From: Paragordius varius
Lineage: Eukaryota > Animalia > Nematomorpha
Assembly (NCBI GenBank): GCA_964247055.1
Contig: OZ176051.1
Location: 14,570,001 to 14,634,000, forward strand
DNA length: 64,000 bases
Reading direction: 5' to 3'
The number at the start of each line of letters is the position of its first letter. Positions within the stretch are counted from its first letter, which is position 1. The translations under genes and the position numbers were made by a program. Under the pieces are notes generated by a model. The model ran no database searches. It had not been told where the DNA came from and worked only from the letters and a program-made list of their open reading frames with translations. Below, in pieces: positions 10,828 to 64,000 of this stretch.

Positions 10828-11706
10828 TATGTTTCTATAACTTAAATTTTATTTATCAGCATTTTAATTAATAAAGATTCCGCCCTTTTTATTGTTTAGG
10901 AATAATTATATTAACCTATCAATATTGATCCAAAAATATGTATATAAATATTAAATATATATAAAAACAATCAACAAATACTTTTTTCAAAATAGTGTTA
11001 TAAAATTCATAAGTCAATACGAAACGTTTTGGACAATTTTTTAAAGAAATGACATCTAAATCTAAATGCAATTCTCAATAATCTTGAAAATTACATAATG
11101 AATTATATTGCTTAATGTAATTCGAGCCACATTCCTAGCCAATTTCATTCATTGTACTAAAAATGGCGTGAGAGGTTCGTTATCTTAATGGAACCGATAT
11201 GAAAAGGTTTATTAGCATTGTGCTAATTAAGGAGGAATACAATTGAATTAAATAAATTTTTGCAGAATCTGCAATTAATACACAGAATGAGACAACAGCT
11301 TTACGAACTATCTTTAAAATATGAGAAATAAAGGAATTACCATAAACTACAAATCATTTTCAGTGAACCTTGTTTAATTAATAATTATATATGTTTGCGA
11401 ATTGAAGAATTTGAGTAGCACTGATCATATTCCCTCACACGTGTCGATATGCAAACCGTGTTTTAAAACGGCTTTTTAACGGATATTAATGAAGCAAAAT
11501 CTTTTAGTAATTTTACAACCATGAATCTAACATTCGAATTCAGAAACTTTAGAAGTCAATCGATATATAAAAATTTTGTGTTTGTCACCTAAATTAAATA
11601 CCCTAATCATAATTAAAAGGTAGCAATGTAATCAGAATAATAAAATATAAATTGAATAACATGTAAAATAATACATCGATTAGGATACATAATATTTTAC
11701 AATTAG

Positions 11707-13826: not shown

Positions 13827-14395
13827 ACATTTGCACTTCAAGAATGTCCTTGAAAACTTCAGGTTGGTCCTAAAACATTTCAAGTTGGTTGAACACTTCA
13901 GTATGGTCCTTGAACATCATATTGGTCCTTTAACTTTTTTGTTTTGTTTTAAACTTTTATCAATCAAATCGTAATATTTTATCGTTTTTGACCTTTTCAA
14001 ATTTTTAAAATAAATTTTAAATATCAATCTTTAATCAGAAACCGGATATCTTTTTTTACTTTCTTAAAATTTGTATGGATATTTATAAGATAACCTAATT
14101 AAATATATAAGTTTTCTAGGTTATTATTTACAATTTTTCATTAAAAACCATTTAAAGTTAAATATTTTGTTAAATTGGAAAAAAATTAGTTTGAAATAAA
14201 ATTGGTATTTGAATAAAAAATTTTATTTTCAAAAAATAGAAATATATAATAAATAAAGAAAATTAGGTTTAAAAATAATAAATAAAAAAATACATGCAAT
14301 TATGGTTAACTCAAAATTTAAAAATTTTAAGGACCAACTTGAAGTGCTCAAGAGCCAACTTGAAGTGTTCAAGGACACTCTTGAAGTGCAAATGG
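13827..14395. mobile_element. Same GGTCC-unit MITE subfamily
   Basis: Same arms and core as 27234-27887, more decayed. Confidence 0.8.
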
Positions 14396-15149
14396 TATAA
14401 TTATTGTATTACAATTAAATTTAATGAGAAATTGTTAACTAAAAATACTTTAATTCTTTCGTCATTTATCTCGGGAGTTTCCCATTAAATTTCTTTGTCC
14501 TATTAATAATTCATACCTCAAGAGAGGACGTGTAAGCACCCTATTGAATAAATTAAGCCTTATTATTATATAAACTATAACATCTACTCCCAAGAGCAAT
14601 CATTTTAAAATATTATTTTATTATTTGTTTAATAGAATAACAAAACATCGCCGGGTAATATTATTAAATATATAATCTATAAAGCGCAATTCATGTTTAA
14701 AATTTATCAAATATGTCAAATAATTATTAAATTTAGTGCATTAGCATATAAATCAGCCCCTAGTTAAGAAAATTAATGTCAAGTAATGGAAAAAGATATC
14801 ATTTCTAAGGCTATTATATCCATATAATTCTGTGTGTTGCTTCAACTTTCAACATTTCTTATCAAAAATCTTGAAAGAAACACATATCCAATATTTTTTA
14901 CAAAAGATAATTTATTTTATTTACACTATAGGGAAGGGTTTTAAATCAAAAAATTATTTAAATCACCATATTACAATTGGAACATATTTTGAATTATAAT
15001 GTATTTCGCCTGATCTGGCCTAACAGAATAAAATTTGGTTGTTAAAAATGTAAATTCTTATGAATTCCAATTGTAAGAATTGCTAGAAATCAATTTTGTA
15101 AACTACGTTCTTGTTTTAGTGGCGGTTACCATGGAATATTTTCTCTCAG

Positions 15150-24100: not shown

Positions 24101-24166
24101 AATGGTATAATATAAATTGTTGTTAACATAATTCATAATACATAGACGCAATAAACGCCGAAGAGT
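15150..24166 (+). CDS. Micro-exon gene, copy A; unknown product (basic region, Gly/Ala hydrophobic segment, acidic low-complexity region, run of 7-aa modules); ends not resolved
   Basis: AG/GT-bounded, phase 1-1, stop-free exons: 15150-15365 (216 bp), 15443-15454 (12), 15512-15523 (12), 16045-16263 (219), 16612-16656 (45), 16728-16766 (39), 16839-16862 (24), 17017-17037 (21), 17094-17135 (42), 17390-17410 (21), 22261-22302 (42), 22331-22345 (15), 22377-22388 (12), 22692-22712 (21), 23684-23704, 23738-23758, 23866-23886, 23950-23970, 24025-24045, 24084-24104, 24146-24166 (each 21). The last 18 each have a homologue in copy B. The first three have no homologue inside the window and are less certain. 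Confidence 0.85.
18790..21774 (-). mobile_element. RTE-clade-like non-LTR retrotransposon (single APE endonuclease + RT ORF), near full length, inactivated
   Basis: ATG at 21774; APE motifs (LCLQETR, GNMNCR, SQIDFV, SDH) at 21714-20998; RT motifs (YRGIALVNTGYKVL, FVDIANAFD, GLKQGCPLSPKLF, YADD) at 20437-19685. At least two in-frame TAG stops and several frameshifts; GC clearly above the flanks; no ORF1 upstream. The 3' boundary is uncertain (18790-18994) and no TSD was found. Confidence 0.9.
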
Positions 24167-25559
24167 GTAAGGGATTTATTTTTTGAAAATTTATTTTCTA
24201 TTAACATTTTAAACTTATTTTTAATACATTAATTTCGTATCCATAACCTGCTAATCAACTCTGCGGGTGTAATCAGCTTTAACCCTTGTGTGAGTTAATG
24301 CTTTGTTAAACCCATCTTTTTATTGGGTTGCCTTTTTTCCTTCAACTAAATAAATGTTTCATTTTGGCAAAAACAACGAATCTCTTTTCGACCAAAACTA
24401 ACAGTTTAACCTCTATTCTATCGATTTAACATCCGTTTTATATCTATCCTTTACTTTCTTTCTCGTTCAACCAATTTTTGTAAAAATGCTGCCGATTTTT
24501 AAATGCTCATTTCTATGACTGGATTGTATCCTCTCTCATAAAATATTAATATTTCTATCGCATAAAACAATAAAGTATTAAAATTTATCCAACAAATTCA
24601 TTTAATATATCTATTTACATCGAAACTTGGATGTTCGCAGATTTTACTTTAAAAAATCTGTTGACGTTCATGTAGTGATATCTATAGATAATATTCATCT
24701 ATTACTCTTTATTAACCTAAACCCGGCGTTTCAGTTTGATAATCCACTTGTTAATGTTTGTACTTAAGCTAGTGTTAAAAATCCTAACCTTTAATGAGTT
24801 TTCGGAATTAAACTTATGCTTCTTTTAAAAACATAGAAAAATAGTTTGTATCTTAATATTATACATTATTCGGTATAATAATGATTGATTAAGTTAAAAT
24901 AATTTGTTTCATAAAATTTAAAGATGGGTACTAATTTCTATATAAAATACAACATAAAACCAAGATTTTTTGGGGGGTTGGGGAGTTATCTTGCCAAAAA
25001 CAGTATAAACTGATATTATTAATTTTTGACTGCAAATTTATACAGTTTAATTATCAATATAAAGACATGGATGCTATTGGTAATTAGATCAGAGTAAACA
25101 TTCACCACGATTTTTTATTAAGGAAAGTTATTTAAGTTTTAGCTTTTTCAATGGGATTTCAAATTTAATTATTTATCATATGATCATATTTTATTTTTCA
25201 AATCGTTAAGGATACATAGTGTTTTTAACCGATAATTTTTTTTATAAAATAATAAAAAAATAGAATTTAATTTTGTTTTCTAAATCCATCCAAATGGATT
25301 GTATGATTTATGGTATTTACTTGATATTTATTTATTAGCTGATATAGACGATAATGAAATATGACTTGGTGAAACACGATGAAGAAAACAACATTACTTT
25401 ATTTAACATTAAAAAATTTATGTTGAGTAAATAGATTATATAAAATGTTGCCAATAAATATATATAAATATTATTTTAGTGCCTTCTTTAGATTAAAAAT
25501 TTAAACAATAGAATAATATATTAATTTTTAGTCCATTATTTTATAACGACTTGAGTTGT

Positions 25560-26270: not shown

Positions 26271-27233
26271 CAGCGATTGTAGCTAATGTATTATGTGAGT
26301 GAAAACTGCTTTCTACCAAAATCATCTTATCTTGGATAATAGTAAAAATTCATTAAAGGATACGTAGTTTTTACTTTGTAAAGTCAGATTTTACGTCGGG
26401 TATTTATTATCAGCGATTTTGGGTTTTAATCTTAAAATTTGGGCAGTTTTTGAATATCAATCATACAAACGGAGAAATAAATTTCATTTTTTAAAGGGAT
26501 AAATCAACGATTAACATCAGTCGTTGGGTTCGAAGGAACTCAAATTTTGCAGGAGTTTAGTTAACTAATTTAGCAATGGATGGAAAAAGGTCATTGGAAT
26601 TCCATTGTATCCTAAAAAAGGAAAAGAAGTGATTTAAGGAAAATAAAAATCGTTCGCTAAATTAGATAATCGAGTGGAAGCTTCAGATATGGGCTAATAT
26701 TAAATGACAAATATGGCATTCAAAAAAAGAAGAGAAACTTCAATTTAATTTAATAATAGTTTAGTTGGTTAACACGATTTACACAAAAAATATCCTTAAT
26801 GCTAATGCATAAAAGTATGGACGTCTTCATGGTGCTTTTTTGGTTCTTACGAATCATTTAAATTAATATTATTACTTTTGCTTTAATTGCTTGATACCAT
26901 AAGAATTCGTACATCATCTCATTGATTTATTGCTCTTCGCTAACACGAACTGGGAGAAAACAGAATCAAAATGCTTGTGAATAAAAGAACTTTTATGTTT
27001 AACTTTTGTAATTTACGAATGCAAAAAAATAAAGTTTTCGAAAAACGCACCCGCTCAAAAATTGACCTATAAAAAACATAATCGAAGATAATTGGGCAAA
27101 TGAATTTAATAAGGTCTTATAAAACCAATTTAATCAAATAAGTATCAATTGTCAACTTCCCTCTATTTTAGTTTTTTTATAATTTAATTTAAAAATATTA
27201 ATAATAAGTTGAAATGGGTTAGGTTTTAATATA

Positions 27234-27887
27234 CCATTTTCACTTCAAGAGTGTCCTTGAACAATTCAAGTTGGTCCTTGAACAATTCAAGTTGGTCCTT
27301 GAACAGTTCAAGTTGGTCCTTAAACACTTCAAGTTGGTCCTTTGACTTTTTTGTTTTGTTTATAACTTTTATCAATCAAATCGTAAATAATTCATCTATT
27401 TTATTGTTTTTAACCTATTTTAATTATTTAACATAAATTTTTAATCGATATCAACTTTTAATCTTTGAACCGTATATCTTTATTAATTTCTTAAAATAAT
27501 TTTGTATTTATAAGATTTTAACACGAAATGAAAAAATATATAATTCTGGGTTTTTAATTAAAATTTTTCATCAAAAACATATAAAAGTCAATAATTTTGT
27601 TCAATTGAAAAAAAATAGTTTGAAACAAAAAAAGTGGTTTTCAATAAATTTTTTTATTTTTGAATGAATAAATATATAATAAATAAAGATAGGTTAATAA
27701 ATAATAAAATAAAAATATAAATGCAAAAATTATGGTTAAATCAAAATTTATAAATTTTAAAGACCAACTTGAAATGTTCAAGGACCAGCTTAAACTGTTC
27801 AAGGACCAACTTCAATTTTCAAGGACTAACTTGCACTGTTCAAGGACCAACTTGAAGTGTTCAAGGACACTCTTGAAGTGCAAATGG
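27234..27887. mobile_element. TATA-flanked CCATTT...AAATGG MITE, subfamily with 21-bp TTCAAGTTGGTCCTTGAACAA units
   Basis: Long inverted arms of tandem 21-bp units around an AT-rich core; TATA on both sides. Confidence 0.85.
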
Positions 27888-28224
27888 TATATTCCAAATT
27901 TAAAAAAAGTATCTATTGCCAAAAATTATATTGAGAAAAATATATAGCAAACGGAAAACTTATATATATGTTGAATAATAAACATAATTTTTATGTATAA
28001 ACTAGCTGGCCCTGTCACGCTTCACTGTAACGTGGTCACATTGATGGTCATTCTTTTTTTCAATAAATAGAACCGGAAATATAAATCAAACTTAACGATA
28101 TTTTATCCAAAATAATCGGGCTCAAGTAACTTAACACAAAATTGTTCATAGAAAACTTTCCTTATTAATTGACTGCCATTTAATTTATTTTTTGTTGTTT
28201 TACAAAATATTGGTCAGTGTAAGG

Positions 28225-36100: not shown

Positions 36101-36500
36101 TAAAAACTATTTAACGGGGGATTCGCAAATCATGGTTTTTTGTCTCTGGTTTGCATTTAAGTTGCACATTTTACTGCTCGATATAATGAAAGAAATAGTT
36201 TAGTATAAGATTTTATTTTTAGCTTAAAGATAAACTTGAATTTGAGCAAACAGGGTTCGATTAAATTATTTAAATTTACAAAAATATATTCCATTTTAAT
36301 CCCTAGAAAGAAAACACCAGATCGTAAAATTGTTTCTAACCTTGTTACAAACTTCACAGCAACCGCAAACATCTCTTCCCACATCACCTTTGCAATCTGT
36401 TGCATTCAAAGGTGGGCACACTTTAGTTTCACACATACAGGTGAGCCCGTTAACACTGAATTCATATGAGAAAATAATGATAGTAGACAAAATGCCATTG
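33101..36500 (-). pseudogene. IGFBP (insulin-like growth factor binding) N-terminal domain gene with an in-frame TGA; possible pseudogene or null allele
   Basis: Phase-0 spliced exons about 36500-36341 (LTCMCETKVCPPLNATDCKGDVGRDVCGCCEVCNK), 36033-35908 (VAGEECRGPF*VYGRCSKGLICEILDLTDYNSEGTCVEERRK) and 33867-33607 or 33583 (NLNETCGSVHQQGLCLPHLYSQQNSPFSMGLCISNP plus a Lys-rich tail). A last exon at 33334-33101 with a hydrophobic end is possible. CGCCxxC and GExC..G.C..GL.C spacing fit the IGFBP domain. TGA at 36001-36003; start codon unresolved. Confidence 0.75.
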
Positions 36501-39469
36501 GAAAAATATATAAGATTATCAGAGTTTCTGTTTATGTTTGAGAATGTTATCCAATTAAAAAGTTGCAATTACATATAATTGACCAGAATCGAAAAAACTA
36601 AATCTGTGCACAATATGCTAATAATTATTTTTCGATAAAGCTAAATCTTTTAAACTAATTTGTAAGTTTAATAATAACCAACTCGTTTTGCACTAAGCGA
36701 AAAAATATTTCATTTTATTAGCATATGAATTATGTTTTAATGAGTGCGACTATCGCTGATTTAAACCGTTTTAAATCGGTTGCACAATACAAACGTTTCT
36801 AAATAGAAACTCTAATTTGATACTCGTGTTAAGTTTCAATAAGCAGTTTTAAAAAAATTTTCATCGAAAACCGTTTCATATTTGGCTGTAGCCCTAATTC
36901 ATAAAAATTGAAGACCACAAACTTATTTTGAGTACTTCAACCCTAATTTTTTACAATATAATATCGGGTTATGTGTATATGAGAACGAAAATATGTAATT
37001 TGGTCCTTCATATTTATAATTTTTATTAATTTTAAACTGTTATAAGTTGAAAATTTTGTGTTTTAATATTTTTTTAGCTATTTTTCAACATATGGACGCT
37101 AAATATCATTTTTTATTGTAGTGTAAAATGTAACAATAAATTTATTTCGCTATGTATGTCCAATCGAATATCCAATTTAGAAACTAATATAATAATATGA
37201 AAATATTATATTGAAACGTTTCAATATATATGGTTGCATATATTCCTAAACCGGGAATGCAAGAAACCCTTAAAATTTTCGCTGAAACCGGTTGATTATG
37301 TTTAATTCGCCTTTATACAACTAAACCACCCCTCTATTTTTATACTTTTTACAGACCGACTGCCTTTGGTTTTAACTCATAAATCAAACTTATTCTATTT
37401 CACCTTTTCGACCAAGCATTAAAGCTTTGGATAATTATATTATACCACAAAAACCTCAAATATACCCCAGAAAATAAGATGTAACCTATCTAAAATATAT
37501 TCGATTCCTTTTCTATATAAAAAAATTGTAATTGATTACCTGATGTAATTAATCATAATCAGAAACGACATTAGTAATAAGTATATTAGATTGCGCAATG
37601 GATTCATTGTTAAACTGGACATAATGTTTGTTAACTTTAAAAAAATTAGTCTGAAAAAATATTATATAATATATTTATTTAATGATTTATTTTATACATT
37701 GGGATAGAAAATCGGTTTTATCAAGTTATTACAGAATGTTTTTGAATGGGTGGGCCTTTCAAACCTATTTTATTATAAATGTTAAACAACTCTAAACTAG
37801 TTTTGGCTTTGTTTACACTTGGTAACCTACTTAAATATTTGGCTAACAAATTTTGTATTGTTTTTTACTATACTATCACCGAGCAGTGTTGAAAATTTGT
37901 GTTTGTTCGATAAATTATACAATCTGCCACCAACCAAGTAATAAATTGAATCATTATTTTACATTTACATCAAATCACTTATTTCGATATTTGACCTTTT
38001 TCAACTAGGTTTTGCGCGTAAAAAATATACTCGACTTTACGGCCTAGTATATTTATTATAAGCGGCTTTTTAACACAAATACGAAATATGTAGTAACTAA
38101 ATAGAAAACGAGAACCAATTTTAAAATATTTAATGACAATAACATGGAAACTGTATACTTATAATAATTTAATACGTTGGTTTTGAAGCAATTTTCCAGA
38201 AACATTTGAAACACAATAAAGAAATATTTTAATTTATTTCAAATTACATAGATTAGCCACTGTGTTTTCTGCTCACCCAATGTAAAAATATGTGCGAGTC
38301 CACAAAAAGTAATTTTTCAAACACGAAATACAAAAATGGATCGAGTATAGTCTAACCACTATTAAACTTGCCCTGTCAGCCCCACTTCCAGTAAAATTTA
38401 TCTTAAAAATATTTGGAGTAGTTATTCGAAAACGTTATTTAATCTATACTATATTTCACTGCTTTTTTAAAAGCTATGTGAATAAAATCTATATCGAATA
38501 TGCTTCCATAAATTTGAATTATTTTGGAAAACACAATCTCTTTGAATTCCTTGAAGAGTCCCAAAAGGAACGTCTCTTGTATTTTTTTCTCCATAAGCTC
38601 TATTATGAGCTAAGTTTACATCTAATTTGTGTTGAGCTTAATCCTCTAAAATTGTTTGCAGGTATGTTTTATGGGATCTGCCCGCTTGACCTTGTAATGT
38701 AATGCATGTTTAGTATAGTTATGGGTCGGATCTCTACGGTATATGTGACCTACCCATCTTAGCCTAGCCATTTGAATGTTATCGGCTATTGATTTTATTT
38801 TTAGCACTGTGTGACGGTCTCATAGGTTAGTTGTGTAATAAATTAAATTGATTGGGATCCTGTTAATATAAGATAGATTATATTTTATAGTCTACGTTCT
38901 GATGGAAATAATTTAGTTTTAAGCGTGTTTGTCAGTGCCCGTCAATGTTTCCGATCAGTATTTTAACAGCGGTTGAATCACTTTGGTGTATAATTGAGCT
39001 ATTGTTGCGAGGTTAATATATCTGTTTAATAGAATAGTTTTCCACGAGTGGAATTTCCATTACCTATATTTATATAGATACACTGGCATGCCCCCTTTTG
39101 CCGTTCACCCATCCTCCTAATCAATCGCAAAAATCTTAGTTTTCGGTGACCGTTTCATCAGAAAACTGTAAAATCTTCCTGACATTAATAACGTAAACCT
39201 AAAACTTTAAAAGATTTTTATTATCAAGCAAGTATAATATTTTAAATTATTTCCACAACCATCTCGAAACAAACCATATCCCGTCAAATTTTATTCTTAA
39301 ATAACCAATTGCAAATTTTCTAAGAGCAAACCATGATGAGATCATACATTGTGAGGCCCTCAAGTACTATAAAGTAAAATTAATATAACAACAAGTAATA
39401 TATTATATAATAAACTCAACTCTAATAATGAAAATGAAACGCGCAAGACTTTAAATTGCAAAAAAACAA

Positions 39470-43200: not shown

Positions 43201-43728
43201 AATTATATATATAGAATCAATCCAATTAAATTATTATCTACTTTCAACTATTTTTTTCATTTATAAACATTTTATCAAATCATTTTAATCAAACCCGAAA
43301 CAATTTGTTTAGACGTTTTTATTAATTTAAAATTAATCTGAAATTTTGTTCAGTTTTGTAAATACATTATGCACTGAGTGGTCCTATACGCTGTAAGTAT
43401 AAGTTACTTAATAGTTGATCTAACATTTTAGTTTCGCTGATAAGTCCTTTTATTTAACCGAATGCCATTTGTTAATTTAAAATATTTTATATATTTTTAG
43501 TTATTATTTAAATATTTTGAATCTATTAAGCTACATGCTGTTAAAAATATTGGGTTATTGAAGGAAATTTCCCATTTATTATTAAAAATGTTTAGTAAAA
43601 ACTCAAAATTTTACGGACAAAATGTGTAAATATAAAGAAATATATTTTTTTCTAAAAGACAACCATACTTTTGAATCTAGATTTATATCAATTAACTTAT
43701 TGTTTTAAATGGCAAAGTGAGCCATATA

Positions 43729-45119
43729 ATGGAAAATGCTGGCTTTGTGATCTGTTTCCGGAAAACCTGTGAACCCAATCAAATCCAAATATCAAAAAAA
43801 TATAATCGTTAATGAATTCCCCGACAATAGCTTCGCCCTTTTTTTGAAATAGGCCCCCAGTTCGGGCCCACCCCGTGTAAAAAACGGGTTTTTTTTGAAA
43901 ACAGAAGTCTACAAAAATCGTGTCTTTGAGACAATTTTCTGGAAAACGTGTTGTACCATTCAATTTCAAATATGATTTTTGTTTACTTATTATTGCGCCG
44001 AACATAGTCGTCTCGCCTTTTTGATTTAGGTCCTCTTTTTACCCGCTACCCCCGTAAATTGCCATTTTTTCCAAAAATAAACAAAGTCCACAAAAATAAT
44101 TTTTTGATTGTATTTTTTGCCCAAGGTATGAGACTGCAAAAATTCAATAAGGATTTTTCGTTCACTGTTAAAAGGCAAAATTTTAGTCAAGCGTTTCTTT
44201 GATGATAACTGCTGGGTAAGGAGCTACCCGCTAAAAACTGATTCCTCATGTAACTTTGTGATCTGTTTCCGGAAAACCGGTGAACCCAATCAAATCCAAA
44301 TATCGAAAAAAATAATCATTAATGAATGCTCGGACAATAGCTTCGCCTTTTACTTAAATAGGCCCCCAGTTCGGACCTACCCCGTGTGAAAAACAGGTTG
44401 AGACAATTTTCCGGAGAACGTGTTGCACCTCGTCAATTTCAAATATGATTTTTGTTTACTTATTTTTGATCGCGCCGAACATAGTCGACTCACTTTTTTG
44501 ATTTAGGCCCTCTTTTTACCCGCTACCCCCGTAAAATGTCAATTTTTTCAAAAAAAAACAAAGTCCACAAAAATAATTTTTTGATTGTATTTTTTTGCCC
44601 AAGGTATGAGACTGTAAAAATTCAATAAGAATTTTTCGTATTCCCTGTTAAAAGGCAAAAATTTTAGTCAAACGTTTCTTTGATTATAGCTGCTGAGTAA
44701 GGAGTATCTATCATATGTATAGGATGTTAAAAAATATATGGATAATAAAACATTATTTATGGTAATCTATATATTTATAAAAATGGAAAATGCTGGCTTT
44801 GTGAATTGGTACCGGAAAACCGGTAGACCCATTTAAATCCAAATATCGAAAAAGTATAATCATTTATGAATGCCCCGACAATAGCTTCGCCCTTTTGTTG
44901 AAATAGGCCCCCAGTTCGGGCCCACCCCGTGTGAAAAACGGTTTTTTTTGAAAACAGAAGTCCACAAAAATCGTGTCTTTGAGACAATTTTCCGGAGAAC
45001 GTGTTGGACCATTCAATTTCATATGATTTTTGTTTACTTATTTTCGATTGCGCCCCCCCTCCCCCCAAGAAGTTCGAAGGACTTCCTCGGGTTGCGTAGT
45101 AGCACGAGATTTGCGCTAG
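43729..45119 (+). mobile_element. Head-to-tail cluster of the same Helitron family (two partial copies plus one internally deleted copy with both termini)
   Basis: Homology to the reverse complement of about 3060-3570 recurs from about 43729, 44253 and 44766. Copy 44766-45119 begins A|TC and ends CTAG|T with the same hairpin. Confidence 0.8.
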
Positions 45120-48100
45120 TAGAGATATATAATAGTAACACAATCAATTTTATATTTTACAATTATATAACAGCTTATATGAGAAACATTAAGGTTTTAA
45201 ATGTATGGTTGTCTTTTAGAAAAAATATTTGTCCTAAAATATTTTCCTTTGTCCGTATATCAATTTTTACTATAAATAAGATTTCTATATGAATGTTAAA
45301 TAAAAATATAGGATAAAAATAGATTAATGCGTAGAGTTGTACTATTTAAATAGTGATTGACTTAAAATGTTCTAATAAAGTGTAAATTAATTACATATGA
45401 AAAATTCAATAATTTTTGATTTTAAGCATAATTTAAATAGAGAACCTAGGGTTATTTTTAATTTTTTACGCAAATAGGATTTACCTAATTATTTATATAA
45501 ATTAAGCCTTAAAAACTGTTTTTGATTGTTATAATAATCTTTGTTGAAAAGAGAATGCATTTTATTTAAAAAGTGATTTAGAATAAAAAACAAATTATTG
45601 AATATACCAAATAAAATTCTGAAATGTAGATCGGTATCCGTTTCGTTTTCTAAAATAGTTATCAATGAAATATAATAGATAAATATGAAAATGACACATA
45701 AAATTTTCAGTCAATTTAGAAATTTTTGTGTCATTTTCTATAACTAATTAAGGGCTAGGGAGATCAGCTTAAATCCTATTACATTTTAAACCTAGTGATA
45801 TAGACTGTTGAAAAAACAAAATAATATTAAGGATATGGAAGTCGTCGATTATAAATGTTCCTGTCCTAATTGCAAAGAGATACCGACATTACATTCTGTA
45901 CAAAATATAAAGATAATTGAAATCTATAAGTTTGGTTTTAGCTTCAATATCTGATATGCGTGCAATAACAAAATTTCTTCCCCTTTATTCATACAGTGTA
46001 TACATTGGTTTTACAATATGGTCAATTAATATACTAGCATATGGATAAAAAAGATAAAATGGTTAAATTTGAGTTTTTTTACTGGATTACAACATTAAAT
46101 ATTAATTTGTTTCATATCGTACGTTACTTTATTACCAATGGACCAATATTATTGTGCATAATAAATGGTTAACATTTCTTAGCATTTGAATTTTTTTAAA
46201 TAGCGATAATAATAAAAAATTATATATCTAATCGAAAAATTTGCTTTCTATGACCTTAAAGCGCTATATATGAAAAAATATTTATAAAAAAATTGGAATT
46301 GTTAGAAATCGATTTTTTACATTTTTAACCCCAAAATGTTTGTGTGCAATATTCTCTAAAAAATTATCCTAAAAAAGGGTGTAATATGTAAGTAAATTAT
46401 ATATCTGTGATTTTTAAATTTTTGATACTATAACATAATATCACACTTTAATTAAATATATTTAAGTATATATTTACAAATTTAAGCTCTCATTTAAAAA
46501 TAACCCTAAAATGTGTTACATAAATTCAAAGGCGATTGAAATGTTCAAATGTTTAAGAATGAAATAAAACCATATTCGACTCAAAAATTTGATAATTTTA
46601 TTGCATATAAACAGCACATATCATGAAATATATTTATGGTGTTTATTTTTTATCCTTTTCTGAGCCGATTTATTAATGGCTGAATTGAACATATTGTTAG
46701 TAAAAAGAAAATTGATTTTACAATTAGTTTATTTTCCTCAAATATTATTTCATTTTAATACTTGAGTATGTTATATGTTCTTTTGTGCCATCCGTTATAT
46801 TAGTTGCTAGTTTTTTATATAATAACATTTATTAAATTCCATGACATTAATTTAATATTGAAGTTAACACAAAGCGATAATAAAACCGTTTTTCAATAGA
46901 AATCGAAAACTAGTTTCATCCTTAAATTTAGTATTTAGAATTTAATTTTGTTTGTGCAAACCATTCCATTATAAAATTAAACAATACAAGTTAACATGGA
47001 TATCAGAAAAACTAATCTTATAAAGCCTATATTTATGTTATTTCTGTTTAATTTTCCTTTATTACAATTTCAGACAAAGCGTAAATACATAAAGTCAAAT
47101 ATTTTTTTTCAAAAGACAACCATACTTTTCTTAACCTTCATTTTTTCTATATAAATTATTAAATAATAATATAATTAAATAGGTTATCTATTTATCTCTA
47201 TCATATATCCAAAAAGTACAAGGGTCTTTTGAAGAAAAAATTATCAATTTTATATTTATTTCCGACTATCAATAAATTGGATTTTGGTAGCAGTAAATTT
47301 CCGTATGTAACTTAGAATATATAATATAGATATATGTGGTATTAGTTAAATTTTGTGAGAGCTTTAAAAGATAATCATTATAATCAGTTTTAAATATTTT
47401 ACATTTATAATATCAAAAATATTAGGTTTTAGTCATAACCATATCCTTATTCAAGTTGTGCCTTGTTGTACTCAGACCCTCTGAATGGCCACGAGCAGTC
47501 AAATATTTTTATCGTATACTAAGTGATCAAAGCATAAAACTAGACTAAATAATTATTGAGAAAAGTTCAACATATCGTTTTTAACTAAATTTTAGATATT
47601 AAAGCTAAAAATATTAATAAACTCATTTACCAATTCTTACAAACTGGTCCGAAATGAATACTATATATAAAGGAAATTATTCATACGTGTGATGTATGAG
47701 TTATCATTTGCCATATCTATAAGTAATAAATATAAGTATGATGCCAAATTTAAGGTACAAATATTATTGTAGATTACGGTTTTTTTGAATATAAAACACC
47801 ACAGCAGAATCCGAAATTCGGAAGTCAGGATGAATAAAAATGAAATTAAAAAAATCAATCAGTGATATATTAAAAAAATCAATTTTATTGGATATTAAAG
47901 TGAAAAAGCGTAAATAAAATTTTTAAAATAAAATCAGCAGTTGTAAAATATCATAAAAAATTTTTGTTGTTTAGCATGTGTCAACCTGGATTCGAGATAT
48001 GGAGTTATGCATTTGTAAAATTAATAGTAAAATAAGCAAACTATACAATTTATTACATCTTTTGGTATAATTAAATTAAATAGTAGATATGTTTAGGATC

Positions 48101-49880: not shown

Positions 49881-51014
49881 TGATATAGAGCACCTACCAC
49901 AAAAGGGTAATAACTTATCACTCGTAAGTTCCAAAACTAAATCATGATAATCTTGATACATTCTATCAAAAATATATATAGAGTAACAACTGAAATTATA
50001 CGGACAAAATGTAAAAATATAAAGACATATTTTTTCAAAAAGACAACCATACTTAATAGATTTATAACAATATAACTCATTTTTTCAATGGCAAGTAAGA
50101 ATAGATATATAACACTAACACAATCAATTTCATATTTTACAATTGTAACTAAGTAGCTTATATAGGAAAAAATAAGGCTTTAAATAGTATAGTTGTCCCT
50201 TATAAAAATATATTTATCTTTGCATTTTTACCTTTTATCCGTTTATTAATTTTTACTGTATTCATCAGGTTATTTTTATACCCCACGATTTCGGAGTCAG
50301 TAAATATATAAATATATATATATATATATTTATAATAACCGCAAAAATGAAAAAATAAATTACCGGCACAAAGAAAAAATTCCAATAATTAAAAACATGT
50401 TTATGGTATATTCTATTGCAGAAATAAAAAAAGTATAGATAAAAATTTTAAATTTATTTATACAAAATTTATATTATAGTGTTGTTAAAAATATAAAAAT
50501 ATATTAAAAGTATTTTTGAAATATTTCCATCTTTGAATTGGGAGGTCAACATAATGCATTTTTTGTAATAATCTATAAATTACTGTAAAAAATAAACCTT
50601 TGATAAAATAAAGATTTAATATATATTTAGCAAAACTATGCTATTAACCTGGTACATATATTTTAGCATTAGAAATTAGCTGTTTAAATAATAAAGTAAA
50701 TATTAAAAATGACAAAAAAATTATTTTAGAAAACAACCATACTTTTGAAATTTTGATTTTTTTACAGTATATAATTTTATTTTTAATATAGGGAAATAAG
50801 TTATTAACAATCCATTCTAAGCCGTGTTTTGCAAACTAAAACGATGTTAAGAATTTATAAACAAGTTGAAAAATATATGATTGTCCTTAAAAAACTTGCC
50901 CTTTAATTGATATGATTTGTCTGTAAAATTGATTTTTTTCATTAGCTGTCCACGCCCTATGATATATTGAATGCGAAAATATGGTCATTTCATATTATAA
51001 ACAGTGCAAAAAAT

Positions 51015-52620: not shown

Positions 52621-52904
52621 TGTTAAAATCGTTTGCATATTATAAACAGAATCAATTTGCTTGTTTAAACAAAAGTATTTGCCTATATACTTTTACGCTT
52701 GTTACGCTTTATGTATAACAATATTTACTGTAAGGCTGAAGATAAATTTCTTAATTGACTCAACTAAGCACAAAACATCTAGATAGATTTTAAAAATATA
52801 AATCTTTTAGATAATTCAGAAATTTATGGTAAAAAATGCCATCCTTACATTGAAGATTATTTTTTTAGCCATTGTAATTAAAACACAGTACTTCCTGAAG
52901 TATA

Positions 52905-53524
52905 CCTTATGCACTTCAAAAGTGTCTTTAAACACTTCTTAACATTTCAAGTTGATCCTAGAACAGTTCAAGTTGGTCTTTGAACAGTTCAAGTTGGTCC
53001 TTGAACATTTCAAGTTGGTCCTTTGAATTTTTTGTTTTGTTTTTAACTTTTATCAATCAAATCGTATATCATTCATCTATTTTATTGTTTTTAACCTATT
53101 TCCCATTTTTTATCATTAATTTCAAATCAATAACTTTTAACATTCAGCGTATATCTTTATTGATTTCTTAATATTATTTTGGATATTTAAAATATTTTAA
53201 AACGAAATGAAAAAAATATAAGTTTTCTGGGTTATTAATAACAATTTTCCATTAAACACATTTTAAAGTTGATATTTTTGTTGAATTGAGAAAAAACGTT
53301 TTAATCAAAAAAGTGGTTTTTCATTCAAAGATTTTATTTTTAAATGAATAAATATAAAATAAATAAATTACGTTACTAAATAATAAAATAAAACAATAAA
53401 TGCAAAAATTATGTTAAATTAAATCATTAAAAATTTTAAGGACCAACTTGAAGTATTCAAAAACCAACTTGAATGTTCAAGGACTATCTTGAAGTGTTCA
53501 AGGGCACTCTTGAAGTGCAAATGG
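52905..53524. mobile_element. Same GGTCC-unit MITE subfamily
   Basis: Same arms and core as 27234-27887. Confidence 0.8.
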
Positions 53525-54513
53525 TATGTTAGGTAGCGTAATGCAATTCAAAAATTTGCTTAGAGCGTTTACGACGTTTTAATGTAAGACTCAAATTACT
53601 TTATGCCCGCTGGATACATAATGAACAAGGCAAACACTGTCAGTTAGGAACGAATATTATACATAAACATCTTTACTTTTCAGATACATTGTTGGTGAAA
53701 GGCAAAGCGATATCTTAAATCCCAGAACAATTAGTTTACTAAAATTACCACATATTTATTTAAGTATTAGCTAGGGTAACGCCATCTTTATATTAGTTTA
53801 AACTTATGTTGGAGATGTTATTATCCTTAAACTATCAATGCTACTAGAGTGACAATACTTCCCTTGATATTCTATGACGGTCCAAGTCCATAATTTTTCT
53901 GACTCGCTTATTATTGCAAATGCTTATTATATATTGAAATCTAAATTTTAATTGGTAAAGGGCGAAAAATAATATTTAAATCATCCGCATATCGTAATCA
54001 ACTATATATTATAAAAATCATTTCTGTATATAACATACCATTTTTATCAAGGCTTAATAGAAAAAACAAATATCGGAAAACATCATTCATTAAACTATGA
54101 TATTTAATTATCATGGGTAAAATGCAATCAATAAAAACTTTTGTATACGATTTTTTTGCTGAATTTGTTGGCCAATCAACAAATAAATATATTATGAATG
54201 TTTTCACCAATCATATTATTTTATTGGAAAATTTAAGCATGTGATACATAGTAATGTATTCGTAATTATGCAGACAAAATTTAATAAAAAGACGAAATGT
54301 TTTTAGAATAAATGTATATTTTTTGCGACAAATAAATGGATGTCTGTTAACACTCCAAATTATATATCAAGTTGTATAGAAAATATTAAGTTTAGAGAAA
54401 ATAGGGTTTTTTTTATAAAATATGTCCTTAAATTTTAAGTTTTGTCCGTATATTTCATATTTAATTTAAGTGTTTCATTTATTCAGTATGATTTATAGAG
54501 AATTTCTTTATAT

Positions 54514-55115: not shown

Positions 55116-56844
55116 CTGTATAGATTCAATATTTGGTTAGACATGTATATGTGCGTTGAGTTGGCGAATGTTCGTCATGACATATACAATTTTATCATCA
55201 AGGGTCAGTCCTGAAAAAACATAACTTTTCAATCAATTAAGTCATCCATTTAATGGTAAAATTTTTCAAATTAAAATAAATGCATTTAAAAACTTTCATT
55301 TGAATTTATTAAATTCATTATTCATTATGTAATTAATAAAGTCCATATTAATATATTGAGTTGGTCTAATCATCACAATCTTCCAAATCATATTTCATTA
55401 TTATCTATATTATCTAAATTTATATCGAAATATTAAAATTTTTTCAAACTCAAAAATAATTTGAAAAATTATTTAGTAAACATCATAATGTAATAAGTAA
55501 AAGGAATTTTTATAAAGACAATCATTGTTTTTCCCATATTCACTAATTACGATTGAAGAAAAAGGTATAAAAATATCATCTGTATTCCCCGATTGTGCAA
55601 CCCAAATGATGAAATAGAAAATATATTTAATTGGCTTTAAAAAAAATATATTTTAGTTTTTAAGTTATGTCATCATGATTTCATTATGATAAAATACATC
55701 ATTTAATTGGCTTGTATCGATAACCAGAATATGGTGGCCCAATAATAATAATCGCAATTGAAAAAAACCAAAAGAAATTAATAAAAGATTTAATTAAATC
55801 TCCTTTAGTAAAATCGTTGATTAATTATTACCTACAACGTCCAAATCTATAATTATAGTAAATATTATAATTTAAGAGTCGTAGTTTGTAGTTATTTTAG
55901 TGTTTTAAACAGAGAAAAAGTTTTAAAATCTGGGTTACATTTCATATGATACTAACAAAAGTATTTATAATTTTAAAACTTTAACAATTGCTCCGATATT
56001 CATAATCGAGTTGGTTATATTTAAATTTTTTTATTATTTTTCCATAGTAATGAGGCATTAAAAATATCCGATTTAAATCAAACGGTAAAAAGATGATAAA
56101 AATCGTAATGATGTAACGTTAATAAAAAATTGTAATGTTAGCTTTGTAAGGCAGCAACATGAAAGATAGGCTAACGTGGGAATAATTTGAAGGCGATTTG
56201 AGTTCTTTATGATTTTATATTTTCAATTTAGGAGCAGTTGGTTAAATAAAACAACATGTGATATGTTTTGTGCAATAGAAATATCAATAAAATTTTATAT
56301 ACTAATCATTAAGGTCAAAAATGGATGAAATCATTTGTGAAAAGATATATAATGGAGAGTGAGCAAGAAAGAAAGTTAATGATTAAGGGTGGACGGATTT
56401 TACATTTAATAATTATGTATTGCATACATCATAATAATTTATTATATAAATTGATTTAACCGTTTTTTGGGAAGAGCACGCAAGTGATTATAATAATCGT
56501 AGTGCATTTTTATATTAAACAATTTGTTGAATCTCGAGCAATTAATTAATCCATAAATAATATATAATTTATGAAACCATATTTTAAATGGCATCGTAAA
56601 GCATAAAATAGACTATATTGGTTTTGGTATACCGAAATTAGAGATGCGCATTATATTATAAATAAAAACAGTTAACAGTTGTTTGAGGAAACAACGAGAG
56701 TATATAAACTCAAGCTGACAAATCGCTTGAATATATAAATGAAGTTAAATAGCTGGTTCTTGACATGACCGCCATTAACAAAATTATTGGAATAAATATG
56801 AATTTTAAAAAATTCACAATAAAATATAAAATTTAGATCCTTAC

Positions 56845-59800
56845 ATTGTTCTATGTCTATGGCGTCTTCAATTAATAAGAAGATAAATGTAATTATGAAA
56901 CAGGTAAAAATTTAGGTAAAACCATTTATGTCTTCGGATAATTCTGCCATATATAAATAAAAAAATAAATGCAAATACAGTAAAAGTTGGAATTATACGG
57001 ACAAAACTTAAAATATAAAGACAAATATTTTTTTGTAAAAGACAACATACTTAATTTTGATTTAATTATAACTCTTTGAACAACAAAGTATAAAATAGAG
57101 ATGTATATTAGTAAAACAATCAATTATATATTTTACCATTAGGATGAATTAAGGTTCAAAAAAGTATGGTTGTTTTTAAAAATATTATCTTAATATTTTA
57201 ACTTTTTTCCGTATTTCAAATTTACTGTATATAGCTTACCCACTATATTTTGATCGCTGGCTAAATAAAATTAGTTTTAAACTGTTTATCGCTTTTATTA
57301 TGTATATATATTAAATAACCTTGAGTTGCGGATGTACTGTCTAGAGTAACGATATAAAAAAATTTAAGATCTTGCATTTTTTGAATTAGATTAGGCATTT
57401 AATTTAAATAATTCTACCAATGAATCCTTGTTCAAGATCTGGTATATAAAACCCAAAATATGATGGTAAATTATATGTTTTTATAATTTATAATGATTTT
57501 TAATAATTATTAATTACCTTGAAATCCATCTTCAACGCCTGATGATAATATATTATAAGATAATCATACCTTCTAAGAGACGCCTCAAATCTGGGAAAAA
57601 ATAAATATTAAAACACTCTAAGAATCACGTGTTTGGAATAAATCAAAGTTTTATTAAATATAGCGATCCCACTCTATGTGGCCTTGTCCTAACCAACTAT
57701 TTTCTTAACGTTAAAAGCCATTATTCCAATTTATTACCTTTTCTGCTTACTTCCAATTATAAATCACCCTCCATTCTAATCTACTCAATCAAAAGACACC
57801 CATAAGAGTTTCTTTGTTTATATTTTAGCTAATTGGCCCATCCACACTTTATTTAATTATCTTCGGTTGTGCCATTGGAGTACAGCTAGCTTATTCATTT
57901 AACAATTTCTTAAATTGAATTATTGAATCTGTGCCAAAACCACAAACTCTATTTTTATCCTAAACCAATTGAACATCTTTTCAAGCAAGTTGTTAACTTT
58001 CTATTTAATTTATCCATATAAGAACAATCGGCAGACATTAGAGTCCAATTAATACCGCATTCGGAAAATTTGAATCATAGAAATTAACAAGGCTGATCCT
58101 TATAATACTTTTTGTATAAATTATAATCAAAAACACGGTCCATCTTTGTTTTGATTGAATGTCTTTTGTACACGGATTACAACTCATTAAATAAATGTAC
58201 AAATATCCTTTTATTAAATACCATCTTACTTGAAAAACTTTAACGAAACTATGAATCTCTTTATTTTTTTCACATTTTGATGCAGGAATCGATCGGAATC
58301 AAATGTAGCTGCTCCCGTAAAAACATCAAAAAAATATATAAACAAAACGTAAAAAACACAATTTTTTTTAAGGAAACACATTATTTTTCAATTGATATCT
58401 AATAGATCAAATTTTAAATTTTTTTTAATAATTGTTTGTTATTTGTGTTATGTTTTTCTTGTATATTTTAAATTTTAGTCTTTAAAATCTTTTGTTTTCT
58501 TATTTAAAAATATAAGCACCATATGACCTTGTTTAATTCGATAAAGGCTTCTTTTATAAATTCTTTCGTTACTTTGTCAATAAACCTACCATCTTTTTAA
58601 AAACAATTTCCAGCACATGTTTTGTTCAAATGTTCCCTGTATTTCGTCCTTTGCGATATTATAAATATGAAATTTTTTTGCATATTCCTTATCTAAGAGT
58701 TTTCCCGCTAATTATCATCGGCATATTCCCTATATCTAATATTCCGTATTACCATATCTCAAAATACATTTTTTCCAACTTTAACATACACCTTATTACG
58801 CGTCTGTTTATAACATATTATTATCTTTGTTTATAGCCATTGTACCGGTTAAACATCTTTTTGCCATCGATGCCTATAAAGGTGCTTTGTATTTCATCAA
58901 CAAATCACGTAGTCAACATATATACGTTGAAATCATTTAATTATCTTTAAATGGATTCTATACCTATTATATATTAAATGGTGAAATTTAACAAGATTGT
59001 TTTTTCTAATAATATTAACTCTTATCAGGCACAATCCTAGAAACTAAAGTGTCCGAAATTGATATCCAAATCAAATCATGAGTTTAAATTGCTAATTTTT
59101 GTAAATTCTTGACAATTTGATTTTATTACATTTAAAAGCATTTGTTGTGCATAAACAATAAAGTTGTTGAAAGGAATTTTAAATTGACATTCAAAACCAT
59201 TGTATTATTTAACTTGAATAATTCATTCCAAGTTTAGGACGTTTATTTTACCAACACTGTTTCGTATTACTAATAAAATCAATAGTTGCTGTTTTATGCA
59301 ACTCCGCCTAACGCACTTTGGGAAGAATTTCCAAAAGACTGTATCTAAACACTGTTAATCGTTTAATCAAATCATTTAAAATTGGTTGATTGATCCTAGT
59401 CTCTCATATCACCAAACATAATTTTGAGTTATTTAAGATTATAAAATAAGTTAAAGAGATATATCGAATTGCCTCTAAAATAAATATCTATATAAATCAA
59501 TTTTGCTTAACTATATAAATGTAAATGACTTAATTATATTGATATTATTCAAGATTCATACAGCCATTTTAGAGAAGATAATAATTATCGGACCAATCTT
59601 TATTAGCATATATTATGATTGTAACCCAATAGTGGCAAACTTACATTAATATATATATTACTTGAGATTTGAACCCTTAAAACTGTCATGCAAAGAATAT
59701 GTATAATTTAGAATGTTTTTAATAATGAAAAATAATTACTTTGAAGGGAATCTAATTATATTTGGCTATCAATACATGTAAATACTTGATTCACTCATAG

Positions 59801-62800
59801 CTGCACAAAATTTAATTTAACATTTTACCATTCAAATGGGTTTCAATTCCCACTTCACTCATGCGCAAAACTGAAAAAATAATTGGATCGTTATTATTCA
59901 AAGTTTTATAAAGCCAAAAAAATTAAAATTCTGATTAAACTAGCATATATTACACAGATTCGTAATTATAACAATAATCATACATGCGATATTAAAAAAA
60001 TAATTTAAAAAATCGCATTCTTTTGATAAGCATGTTTGTGTTTTTTAAGTCGATTCCAATTAAGACCAATTTGACCAAAGTACAAATTAGTGTTTTTTTA
60101 ATCCAATGCCTAACATTGTAAGAAAAAATTTTGATCCCATTAATTATCGATAAAAAATATAAATCACTGATAAAAACTTTTAATTATGTATATTAGGGAA
60201 CTAATAATGATTATAATAAAACAATTCTTCTACAAAACATAATGAATTAACACGAAATAAAAAAATTTATTTGATTTTTATCGTACTCATAACCAATTAT
60301 GTATATTTTAACTAATATTCTGTAGTTAATATATAAATATTTTAATAGGCATTATCCTCATTAAATACTCTAGGTTGACGCTAAATATAAAACTTATCAA
60401 AGGATTTAAGAAAATAATCATTCAGTGCTATATTTTGCCATAAGCTTTGCTGAAAATATAACAAAATATTGCGCCTACTGTTAAAATTATTATTTTTTTA
60501 TTCAAAAGCGTTATCCGTTTGTTTATCCCAAGTAGAGTAGATAAAAGTAGAACATTTAAAATGACTGTACGAATATTTTGGAATCTTTTGAGGAATATAA
60601 TATTTTGAAAATATTACACTTTACTCCCTTAGTGCAGGAGTCTCCAGGACGCATGGCTTCGTGGACCGCAATTTTTAAAAACAGTGCCAAGCATTCAAAA
60701 ATTGATAAATATTTTGTGAGATGTTTTAAAAAATAAAATAATTGCACAAATTTAACCACGTTTAATTAACTTATTTTTGCTATTATTAAGTGTCTTTTTA
60801 GTTAATTCAAAATCAGCTTATCCAATTAGAGCCTACTACTTAAAATTTCTAGCAGGCCGCACATAATGCAGTAAATATTGAAATAAATCTGTGATTACGC
60901 ACACCGTTTGGAATATCTTATAATGACTGGTAAAACGGGAGGAAAAAGGAAGCACGGCCATTTAAAATGCACTAAGCTAAAAATCTGACTTAAAACACAA
61001 ACATTTCATAACAAAATCTTATACCCTTATTTACAACAGTAATTTGGAGAAAATTCACCTAGGAAAAGCTATAATAAACCACTTTATCTACATTCAAACA
61101 TCATATATTAATGTTCTGACTATCGTTTATAATTCAATTATTCATTTTACCAAAATTGTGTGGGTTAACTAATAATTATTTGTGTGACTGATGAATACTA
61201 CCTCTGTCATTTTCATCCTATGGAGTATTTTCCATAAAAATATAAATAATAATTTTATGCACATGAAATCTGCTAGAATTTTAATATTAAATGATTTCCC
61301 CATCAAAATCGTGTCATAATACCAAAATAGCAGAAAGCTCACTTTTTGAATTGGCCAGATATTTGAGCATAATTTAGGCCTTAAAGCCTGAAAAAACGGC
61401 TCAAAGTTTGAAGTTTTAGCGTTATATTATATATTTCATGAATTTAAAACACTTTTGCATTTGTCTATATTTCTGCTTGTTATAAATTCAACATTTACCA
61501 TACCTCTTTCTAGAATTCGTGTATCTTAAAATTAGGGTAAGTTATATAAAAATGTACTGGAAATTAAATTTTCCACTTCCTCCATCATTATTTCGGCTCC
61601 TAAATTAAGAAAAAGTTTAGCATAAAGTTTTTTGATTTGTGTATTCGGTGCCTTACTTGCTCCCATATTGTATAAAGCTAAATATTATTGAAAATATATA
61701 ATATTTTATTTTAATTAATATCATTCCAAATATTATGTAATTTACCTATCCGTAAATTCTCTGTGCCTATCATTGTTACACAATATATATTATTGAATTT
61801 AAAAATTAATATTATTTATATTGTATATTCTAATATTAAAAAATCTGAAAACATTTTCCCACTTCCTGATGTGGGGCAGTTATCACAAAAGTGCAAATAC
61901 TTGCACATAACTAAAAGAAAGCACCATTAGAATCCTATTAGATTACAGATTATACATAATACGTACATATATATCATGGCTTCACACAACCGGAACCCGA
62001 TTCATGAGATTTTTCAAACCGTTCGAGTTTTATTCACACAGGAAAACACAGACGGGGTTGTAAAATTGCAGGATGCATTTCCTATTTTCTGAATCAAAAT
62101 ATTAACAATTTTTTTCTAAATCTCTCCTAACACAAGTGAATCATTGGAATAATTATTTCATAACTTTCTTTTATATATTGATATATGGATACATTATTAT
62201 TTATCTAGACTCAAATCTGAGCACATTATATTATTATATTAAACTTTGGGGACACGGATATTGAGGCTTCTAAGAAATAAAACCTAATTCAATTGACGAC
62301 TAATTCTATAATAAACTCTCAGATGGGCTGTTCAACCAAGTAACCGATTTATAAAATTTGGCAGATATGTAGCTGCACCAGTTCATTCGTAGACTTTTCT
62401 TGATGTTATTTTTATATTTTTTAGATATGTGAATAGCCTGACGACGGTGTGGTACAATCATTTTTATCGATTTCATTCATGGATGTGACACCTATCCTAA
62501 AGAGACTTATCGCCTATCTATAATCATTTACTTGGCTATTTAATTTAATGTTTTTATAACTCTTGATATTTTGATTTTATATTATTATATAAAATTTTTG
62601 TATGAAAATCATTTATGAAAAACCCCTAATTAAAACAAAACCGATTCCAAAACCGGTTCTTTCGATACCATTAAATTATCGACCCAGTTGCGGTTTTTTT
62701 ACTCATGAACCACCCCGGAGGCAGTTCCTAAATAACAAGCACCGCGGTTTCATTTTCGATTACTAGAAGCCATGCCTCCATTTTTTTTGGCCCAGCTCGA

Positions 62801-63456
62801 TGCTCTGACATATACATATATAAACAAATATATTAGATATATCGTATCTAGATCTACCGAATTGATCCACGATTTCTCGAGCTATATAATCAAAAATATC
62901 TGTATAACTAATATTTGGGTGATTATTTTCGACATAAAATAATTACCATTTTGTATTTCCTCTGTCGTAGGTTCTGGTCTATTAGCTAAATATAAATTAT
63001 TTAATTTTATTATTCTAAGTTCATACGTATATTTTTTATATATATTATATGTGAATTTAAACCAATATCTTCTGTATCTAAGCTGTCTGTTTTTGCAGAT
63101 GGATTTCCTATAAAACAATTTATAACGAATCATATATGCGGAAATTAATTAGTGTATTACCTTCACTTTCAGAATCTACAACAAAATTAATTGATTGTAC
63201 ATAATTGAAAATAAATTATTTGATATGTAATTACTCAAATTTGAATCAGACTGAGAAGGTTGATTATTCCCAGCATCAGCTCTTGACTCTGTTGGTGGAT
63301 TTTCTGGGATTTCTTCATTTTGACTCTCTTCAACAGTCGGGTTTTCGTTGTTGGCGAGATTGTTTGGTATATTTTCGCCCCCTAACTCGATATCATTGAT
63401 GCCTTGTGCGATAGCTACAACTTCTGGTGTTTCCGAGGCTCCAGCACCCACAATGG
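56845..63456 (-). CDS. Micro-exon gene, copy B (inverted paralog of copy A; 5' part probably beyond the window end)
   Basis: Minus-strand AG/GT-bounded phase 1-1 exons in the same order and sizes as copy A: 63235-63456 (222), 63063-63107 (45), 62947-62985 (39), 62858-62881 (24), 61657-61677 (21), 61558-61599 (42), 61504-61524 (21), 59829-59870 (42), 59786-59800 (15), 59740-59751 (12), 59662-59682 (21), 57572-57592, 57518-57538, 57418-57438, 57320-57340, 57240-57260, 56923-56943, 56845-56865 (each 21). Example pairs: DRPEYTPEEIEN/NRPEPTTEEIQN, VEDEFH/VEDGFQ, SDQNIV identical. Confidence 0.87.
56978..57227. mobile_element. Same TA-flanked MITE family, inside an intron of copy B
   Basis: TA|CAGTAAAAGTTGGAATTATACGGACAAAA ... 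TTCAAATTTACTG|TA. Further full or half copies near 11950-12390, 16290-16540, 17160-17370, 17860, 22420-22670, 41050, 43600, 45190, 47080, 49985-50260, 50700, 54400 and 63540. Confidence 0.85.
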
Positions 63457-64000
63457 CTGAAAATATTAATATTTTGATGATCCCCGAAATTTGATTGAAA
63501 TTAACAGTGTAACATGGTAAAATTTAATTTTAGTCAAAAATATTAAAATTGTCGGACGGTTTTATGAACACAACCAATTTTTAAAATTAAAATTCTTATA
63601 TTTTATTTCATACTATACCGATTCTGATTTGTTATCGACAAAGAGCTCACTGCCAAATTTGCCTGATTTTTTTATTTTACCCTATCTATTTCCTTGGGAA
63701 TGTAAATTTATTCTTGGATATGTATTTTAGTACAGTTCTTTAATTATTATAAAATATTTTATTGATTGCACTTTTAAAAGTAAATTTAATATATAACACA
63801 ACAATAATATATATAGATAATAATATATAATCTGATTGTTTTGTTAATACATTTTAATTTATAATAATTAAGAGAATCGTACCGCAAAAATGGAACAAAA
63901 TTTTGCACGTGTGAAAACATGTAATGTAATAAAAGATAAATTTCTTCAATTTTGAAATACTAGAGAGAGACGATAGTACAAAAGAAAGCATTACTGTTAA

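Follow-up and report, generated by a model that had tools for sequence, protein, structure and literature searches.

A diverged inverted copy preserves a ladder of phase-1 micro-exons in the hairworm Paragordius varius

Micro-exon genes (MEGs) carry much of their coding sequence in very small symmetric exons; their products are secreted or membrane-anchored, and the genes are easily missed by automatic annotation (PMC4350168, PMC10526429). The bicycle genes of aphids also have small internal exons, nearly all of which start at codon position 2 (PMC9168663). For Nematomorpha, no paper describing micro-exon genes was found in the literature, and the genome paper on Gordionus contains no discussion of exons or introns (bioRxiv 10.1101/2023.06.26.546503). 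Here we describe two copies of a gene with a ladder of micro-exons in a stretch of 64,000 nucleotides of the nematomorph Paragordius varius (assembly GCA_964247055.1, contig OZ176051.1, positions 14,570,001 to 14,634,000 of the forward strand). This stretch is called the window, and all coordinates are those of the window. Copy A lies on the plus strand and copy B on the minus strand. An earlier annotation made from the letters alone (the first-pass annotation) had listed 18 exons in copy B, spanning 63456-56845, and their partners in copy A span 16045-24166.

All 18 listed exons of copy B were present on the minus strand, each with AG before it and GT after it, and all were collinear with their partners in copy A. 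Exons were paired by matching every AG-flanked, GT-followed and frame-open segment to segments of equal length elsewhere in the window. Seventeen of the 18 pairs had identical lengths, and the remaining one, the large exon, measured 222 nt in B and 219 nt in A, a gap of 3 nt that corresponds to one codon. Intron lengths, by comparison, were equal in only one of 18 pairs (28/28 nt). All introns were of the GT-AG type and in phase 1, that is, inserted after the first codon base, and all internal exons are hence symmetric. The distance of about 33 kb given for the two copies agrees with the measured 32.7 kb from 24166 to 56845. When both proteins were searched against the window with tblastn, copies A and B were found and no third copy. 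The suggestion of a local multigene family that may extend past the window thus gained no support beyond this pair.

Copy A was compared with the reverse complement of copy B, and the exons lay well above the intron cores in identity. Micro-exons were identical at 343 of 450 positions (76%) with no gaps. The cores of eleven introns of similar length, from which the splice signals had been trimmed, were 45-72% identical counting gaps as against 41-59% for shuffled sequences, which is barely above the null. The Nei-Gojobori method gave 0.57 synonymous (dS) and 0.20 nonsynonymous (dN) substitutions per site, with a ratio dN/dS of 0.35 (Fisher p 9e-8); the ratio was 0.31 for the micro-exons alone. 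Differences were most frequent at the third codon position (0.288), less so at the first (0.247) and least at the second (0.144), and no out-of-frame indel separated the exons of A and B. Conservation of a non-coding kind can be set aside. In five segments of the gene dN/dS ranged from 0.21 to 0.67, always below 1, and positive or diversifying selection was rejected, as no segment exceeded 0.67.

Neutral decay of copy B was simulated at 0.1 substitutions per site. Only 3% of runs preserved an open frame and 0.075% the full set of 39 splice dinucleotides, and 0 of 20,000 runs preserved both together. The intactness of frame and splice sites, the dN/dS ratio and the higher conservation of exons than introns therefore indicate that both copies are maintained genes. 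The proposal that the second copy gives independent support for real and constrained micro-exons was thus borne out by dN/dS, by the codon-position pattern, by the identity of exons relative to introns and by the decay simulation. A decaying pseudogene, B or A, whose ladder is merely inherited similarity, would account for the in-frame TAA that A carries in its counterpart of one B candidate exon, and would suit a ladder known from DNA alone in a copy whose 5′ end lies beyond the window. However, at the observed divergence a copy evolving neutrally would hardly ever retain its frame along with 39 splice dinucleotides, and the low dN/dS, the lack of out-of-frame exon indels and the far better preservation of exons than introns also speak against decay, which makes this explanation very improbable. 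An assembly artefact, in which a single locus appears twice as an uncollapsed haplotype or through a false inverted duplication, deserves practically no credence, and nothing in the sequence speaks for it. Exons of the two copies differ at 24% of bases and their proteins at 36% of residues, to be set against a published heterozygosity of 0.55% in a related hairworm genome (bioRxiv 10.1101/2023.06.26.546503); moreover, the copies carry different transposon insertions and nearly all of their introns differ in length.

Divergence between the copies is uneven along the gene: identity reaches 95% and 100% in two adjacent exons, without any synonymous difference, as against 57-67% in others. Such a pattern could arise if exon similarity were kept up not by selection on the protein but by gene conversion from one inverted copy to the other. 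But the intron of 54/59 nt between these two exons was no better kept than others (0.64 vs a null of 0.55, z 1.8), so a conversion tract would need to be shorter than 25 nt, and this twice. The non-conserved intron argues for selection over a conversion tract, and the overall dS of 0.57 indicates no general homogenisation. We regard gene conversion as very unlikely. Copy B is thus very probably a functional, convergently oriented paralog of copy A that arose through an old inverted duplication (dS about 0.57). The comparison shows that A and B keep the same ladder of GT-AG, frame-neutral exons in phase 1, each 12-45 nt long, that moderate purifying selection acts on the coding sequence, and that the introns drift freely and accumulate transposon insertions.

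The exons of copy B and their partners in copy A are listed in Table 1. The range 63456-56845 given for the gene by the first-pass annotation holds real exons but proved too narrow at both ends. At the 3′ side, the last listed exon (56865-56845) ends in a GTAAGG donor that is conserved in A and B, and the tails obtained by reading through this donor were unrelated between the copies. A terminal exon of 26 nt lies about 1.2-1.4 kb beyond and is conserved, with TGA at the same codon, in A (25339-25364) and B (55413-55388). Poly(A) signals occur within 80-130 nt downstream, with AATAAA 78 nt past the terminal exon of B. At the 5′ side, the ATG of copy A lies at 15131 in a good context, and two exons of 12 nt come next. 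No counterparts of the ATG exon or of the two 12-nt exons were found in positions 63457-64000 of copy B, and its 5′ end therefore lies beyond the end of the window. Copy A has a complete frame from ATG to TGA with 22 exons and 310 codons (15131-25364, plus strand), and copy B has 20 exons and 231 codons within the window. Micro-exons (≤51 nt) make up 479 of 933 nt (51%) of the coding sequence of A and 476 of 698 nt of the part of B in the window. One 21-nt exon had been placed between the 24-nt and 42-nt exons. It is present, but B holds two candidates there (61766-61746 and 61677-61657) rather than one. The first of them is open in B (GTENLRI) and its counterpart in A, 16935-16955, contains an in-frame TAA, so that 61746-61766 may be either a copy-specific exon or no exon at all.

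Table 1. Exons of copy B, their partners in copy A, and one inserted repeat. Identities are for ungapped nucleotide comparison of B with its A partner unless marked as amino-acid.
Feature	Position	Strand	Remarks
Large exon, 222 nt, phase 1	63235..63456	-	67% amino-acid identity to A 16045-16263, one codon longer; first exon of B in the window; codes the end of the predicted Gly/Ala-rich membrane segment and the acidic low-complexity stretch
Uncertain candidate found in B only, 15 nt, phase 1, in intron 1	63161..63175	-	AG/GT, open; A lacks an acceptor there
Exon, 45 nt	63063..63107	-	73% identical to A 16612-16656
Exon, 39 nt	62947..62985	-	77% identical to A 16728-16766
Exon, 24 nt	62858..62881	-	88% identical to A 16839-16862
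Candidate exon, 21 nt	61746..61766	-	57% identical to A 16935-16955; splice sites and acceptor flank conserved
Exon, 21 nt	61657..61677	-	67% identical to A 17017-17037
Exon, 42 nt, equal to two units of seven residues	61558..61599	-	64% identical to A 17094-17135
Exon, 21 nt	61504..61524	-	67% identical to A 17390-17410
Exon, 42 nt	59829..59870	-	76% identical to A 22261-22302; the next intron measures 28 nt in A and in B
Exon, 15 nt	59786..59800	-	80% identical to A 22331-22345
Exon, 12 nt	59740..59751	-	67% identical to A 22377-22388
Exon, 21 nt, first in run of eight	59662..59682	-	86% identical to A 22692-22712
Exon, 21 nt	57570..57590	-	71% identical to A 23684-23704
Exon, 21 nt	57518..57538	-	76% identical to A 23738-23758
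Exon, 21 nt	57418..57438	-	86% identical to A 23866-23886
Exon, 21 nt	57320..57340	-	95% identical to A 23950-23970
Exon, 21 nt	57240..57260	-	100% identical to A 24025-24045
Exon, 21 nt	56923..56943	-	86% identical to A 24084-24104
Exon, 21 nt, last of the first-pass annotation	56845..56865	-	67% identical to A 24146-24166
Terminal coding exon, 26 nt with TGA	55388..55413	-	Conserved with A 25339-25364
Palindromic repeat, about 270 bp, resembling a miniature inverted-repeat transposable element	56961..57233	.	Insertion in intron 17 of B, which measures 296 nt as against 38 nt in A

As deduced from the frame of copy A, the sequence suggests a single-pass membrane protein of about 310 residues. 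Residues 1-66 form a basic N-terminus (isoelectric point, pI, 10.2) without a hydrophobic segment, which would be cytoplasmic by the positive-inside rule. Residues 67-93 form a Gly/Ala-rich hydrophobic segment of 27 residues to which four exons contribute; its Kyte-Doolittle score over 19 residues peaks at 1.86. This segment could plausibly act as a signal anchor, which would place the C-terminus outside the cell or in a lumen. The remainder of the copy A protein is acidic (pI 4.1-4.3) and consists of a low-complexity stretch followed by a helical-looking part. Neither A nor the part of B in the window encodes any cysteine, and the copy A protein has no N-glycosylation sequon. In the 21-nt exons, hydrophobic residues occur at positions 2 and 5/6 more consistently than in within-exon shuffles (p 0.008 in A, 0.025 in B), which modestly supports an arrangement of one exon per heptad. 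The product may thus be membrane-anchored, with an acidic, cysteine-free outer part ending in amphipathic helices to which each 21-nt exon would contribute one seven-residue unit in a fixed register. Origin of the 21-nt exons by recent tandem exon duplication found no clear support. Their similarity to one another exceeded that of shuffles by little (mean p about 0.01), and the best pair matched at 12 of 21 positions (p 0.17).

Several points weigh against the reading of A and B as a pair of functional genes for such a protein. The start codon and the membrane-segment exons of B lie beyond the window end. Exon use is deduced from two paralogs only, which matters most for 61766-61746, for 63175-63161 and for the choice of terminal exon. 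The comparison covers the two copies, and for constraint on each copy taken singly it offers the intactness argument. A Fourier analysis of hydrophobic periodicity at 3.5 residues over the whole C-terminal part was not significant (p 0.16-0.21), and the coiled-coil reading therefore depends only on the register within single exons. Homology searches gave no relatives. Their queries were single contiguous exons, short and of low complexity, and blank results from them are weak evidence. A word-indexed search of a library of 5.8 billion proteins with the large exon of B and exon 1 of A returned no candidates, a full HMMER search of 1.84 billion representative proteins with a profile of both large exons gave 0 matches, and Pfam gave nothing at E values up to 10. 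The sole match in a PDB sequence search had an E value of 0.41 and was rejected as chance. Metagenome contigs were scanned twice for exact patterns of the best-conserved pair of exons, with 0 matches.

The introns of copy B range from 28 to 2071 nt. The first-pass annotation had described the longer introns as diverged or enlarged by insertions, and this was confirmed by the palindromic repeat in intron 17 of B and by a long interspersed nuclear element (LINE) in the 4850-nt intron of A. The palindromic repeat occurs in at least eight copies in the window, including 49968-50261, 10560-10830, 8606-8851 and, in intron 1 of A, 16289-16418. The LINE (18994-21714, minus strand) is degenerate, with open reading frames (ORFs) for RVT_1 and endonuclease/exonuclease/phosphatase domains in four pieces, and is the GC-richest part of the window (36-42%). 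Its reverse-transcriptase ORF had no relative at an E value of 1e-10 or better in the word-indexed protein library, and an exact look-up was also empty. The other long introns of B contained no repeats found elsewhere in the window and no notable ORFs. Four introns of B are only 28-34 nt long (59801-59828, 59752-59785, 57539-57569 and 61525-61557). The micro-exons of 12-15 nt sit between very short introns in B, and micro-exons may be recognised by intron definition.

The window is very AT-rich, with a GC content of about 27% overall and about 23-31% outside one transposon; the overall value agrees with the 26.93% of the Gordionus montsenyensis genome (bioRxiv 10.1101/2023.06.26.546503). It resembles animal DNA with small exons, and Rfam and tRNA scans of it gave no matches. 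The two copies had been described as facing each other across an IGFBP-domain gene. They are indeed convergent (tail-to-tail) across an IGFBP-like exon, but the domain match there is weak. The exon-like ORF concerned (36296-36568, minus strand) lies between the two stop codons, which are 30 kb apart, and matches the IGFBP N-terminal domain at an E value of 0.0055, under the Pfam curated cut-off. Two further ORFs on the minus strand, 43697-44005 and 44775-45143, share a similar peptide stretch (…TGWARTGGLFQ.KGEAIVG.FINDY…) without a Pfam match and probably represent copies from a further family of repeats. An element with a foldback-like structure, about 600-670 bp long, occurs in three copies (13822-14399, 27227-27896 and 52901-53531), and its terminal inverted repeats are made of about four tandem 21-bp units. 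One copy lies 1863 nt past the stop codon of A and another 1857 nt past that of B, at nearly equal spacing. These elements were considered as boundaries of the original duplication and rejected. The two copies past the stop codons are 82% identical and in the same orientation; at this identity they are younger than the gene duplication, and therefore not part of the duplicated segment.

Since all internal exons are symmetric, the frame would survive the skipping of any one, and in the case of 21-nt exons so would the helix register, so that protein variants are conceivable. An extension of the paralog reading is that the genes generate variants in the manner of schistosome MEGs, combinatorial skipping giving rise to a pool of surface or secreted proteins that vary by a few residues or, in the present case, by entire seven-residue units. 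This would agree with the symmetric phase-1 exons, a property said to permit skipping in MEGs (PMC4350168), with a run of eight exons that share one register and each code for exactly seven residues, and with the candidate exon that has an open frame in B but not in A. Against it, the dN/dS found here (0.35) reflects purifying selection of an ordinary kind, in contrast to the high values reported for mature MEG regions (PMC4350168), and the retention of every exon in both copies over a dS of 0.57 suggests that each is needed. On balance we hold this extension to be unlikely, if still worth considering. More doubtful is the broader idea that the pair belongs to an unannotated class of phase-1 micro-exon genes spread across the genome of a hairworm-like parasite, with an origin independent of the like architecture in flukes and aphids, and that in this member, with one exon per seven-residue helical unit, skipping shortens a membrane-anchored helical rod in register-preserving steps. 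If true, splicing would offer a means of varying the length or the surface of an exposed protein. A genome-wide class would mean that the same architecture arose in a further lineage, apart from flukes and sap-sucking insects, and would bear on why parasites repeatedly evolve such architecture and on how exons of 12-21 nt are recognised beside introns of 28 nt and 2 kb.

Standard gene finders do not see micro-exon genes, and the diverged second copy is here the only evidence that the ladder is a real and selected gene. Comparison of the two copies also sets the exon boundaries to the base. As a single locus the pair is a solid but incremental piece, and a genome-wide phenomenon may be new.

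Among other genes with repeated small exons, fibrillar collagen genes are built from exon units of 54 bp. The present genes are like them in that exon length is locked to a structural repeat of the protein, with boundaries at a fixed position of the repeat. They differ in the repeat itself, which is a seven-residue amphipathic unit rather than Gly-X-Y triplets, and in phase and protein class, and the two are not homologous.

The closest likeness in gene structure is to MEGs and bicycle genes. As in MEGs, tiny symmetric exons with lengths that are multiples of three lie among introns of up to kilobases, the introns are rich in transposable elements, and local duplication has occurred. Unlike MEGs, which are described as platyhelminth-restricted, the present genes belong to a nematomorph genome, and they had no sequence match to described MEG families in the libraries searched with contiguous exons. 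Only 51% of the coding sequence of A is in micro-exons, and the predicted product combines a long basic N-terminus with a putative signal anchor further inside, where MEG products would have a signal peptide at the N-terminus. The dN/dS of 0.35 also differs from values near or above 1 in MEGs (PMC4350168). With bicycle genes, which average about 17 exons, and with the megacycle gene of aphids, the pair shares many small internal exons in the same phase; bicycle genes, too, are undetectable by sequence similarity and are recognised by gene structure. Bicycle proteins, however, carry an N-terminal signal peptide and paired Cys-Tyr-Cys motifs, whereas the copy A protein has no hydrophobic segment at its N-terminus and no cysteine is encoded in A or in the part of B in the window. 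Bicycle genes, moreover, belong to sap-sucking Hemiptera, with expression in the salivary glands, and evolve rapidly, in contrast to the ordinary purifying selection found here. Judged from its sequence, the pair thus appears to belong to neither group and to resemble MEGs and bicycle genes in design only.

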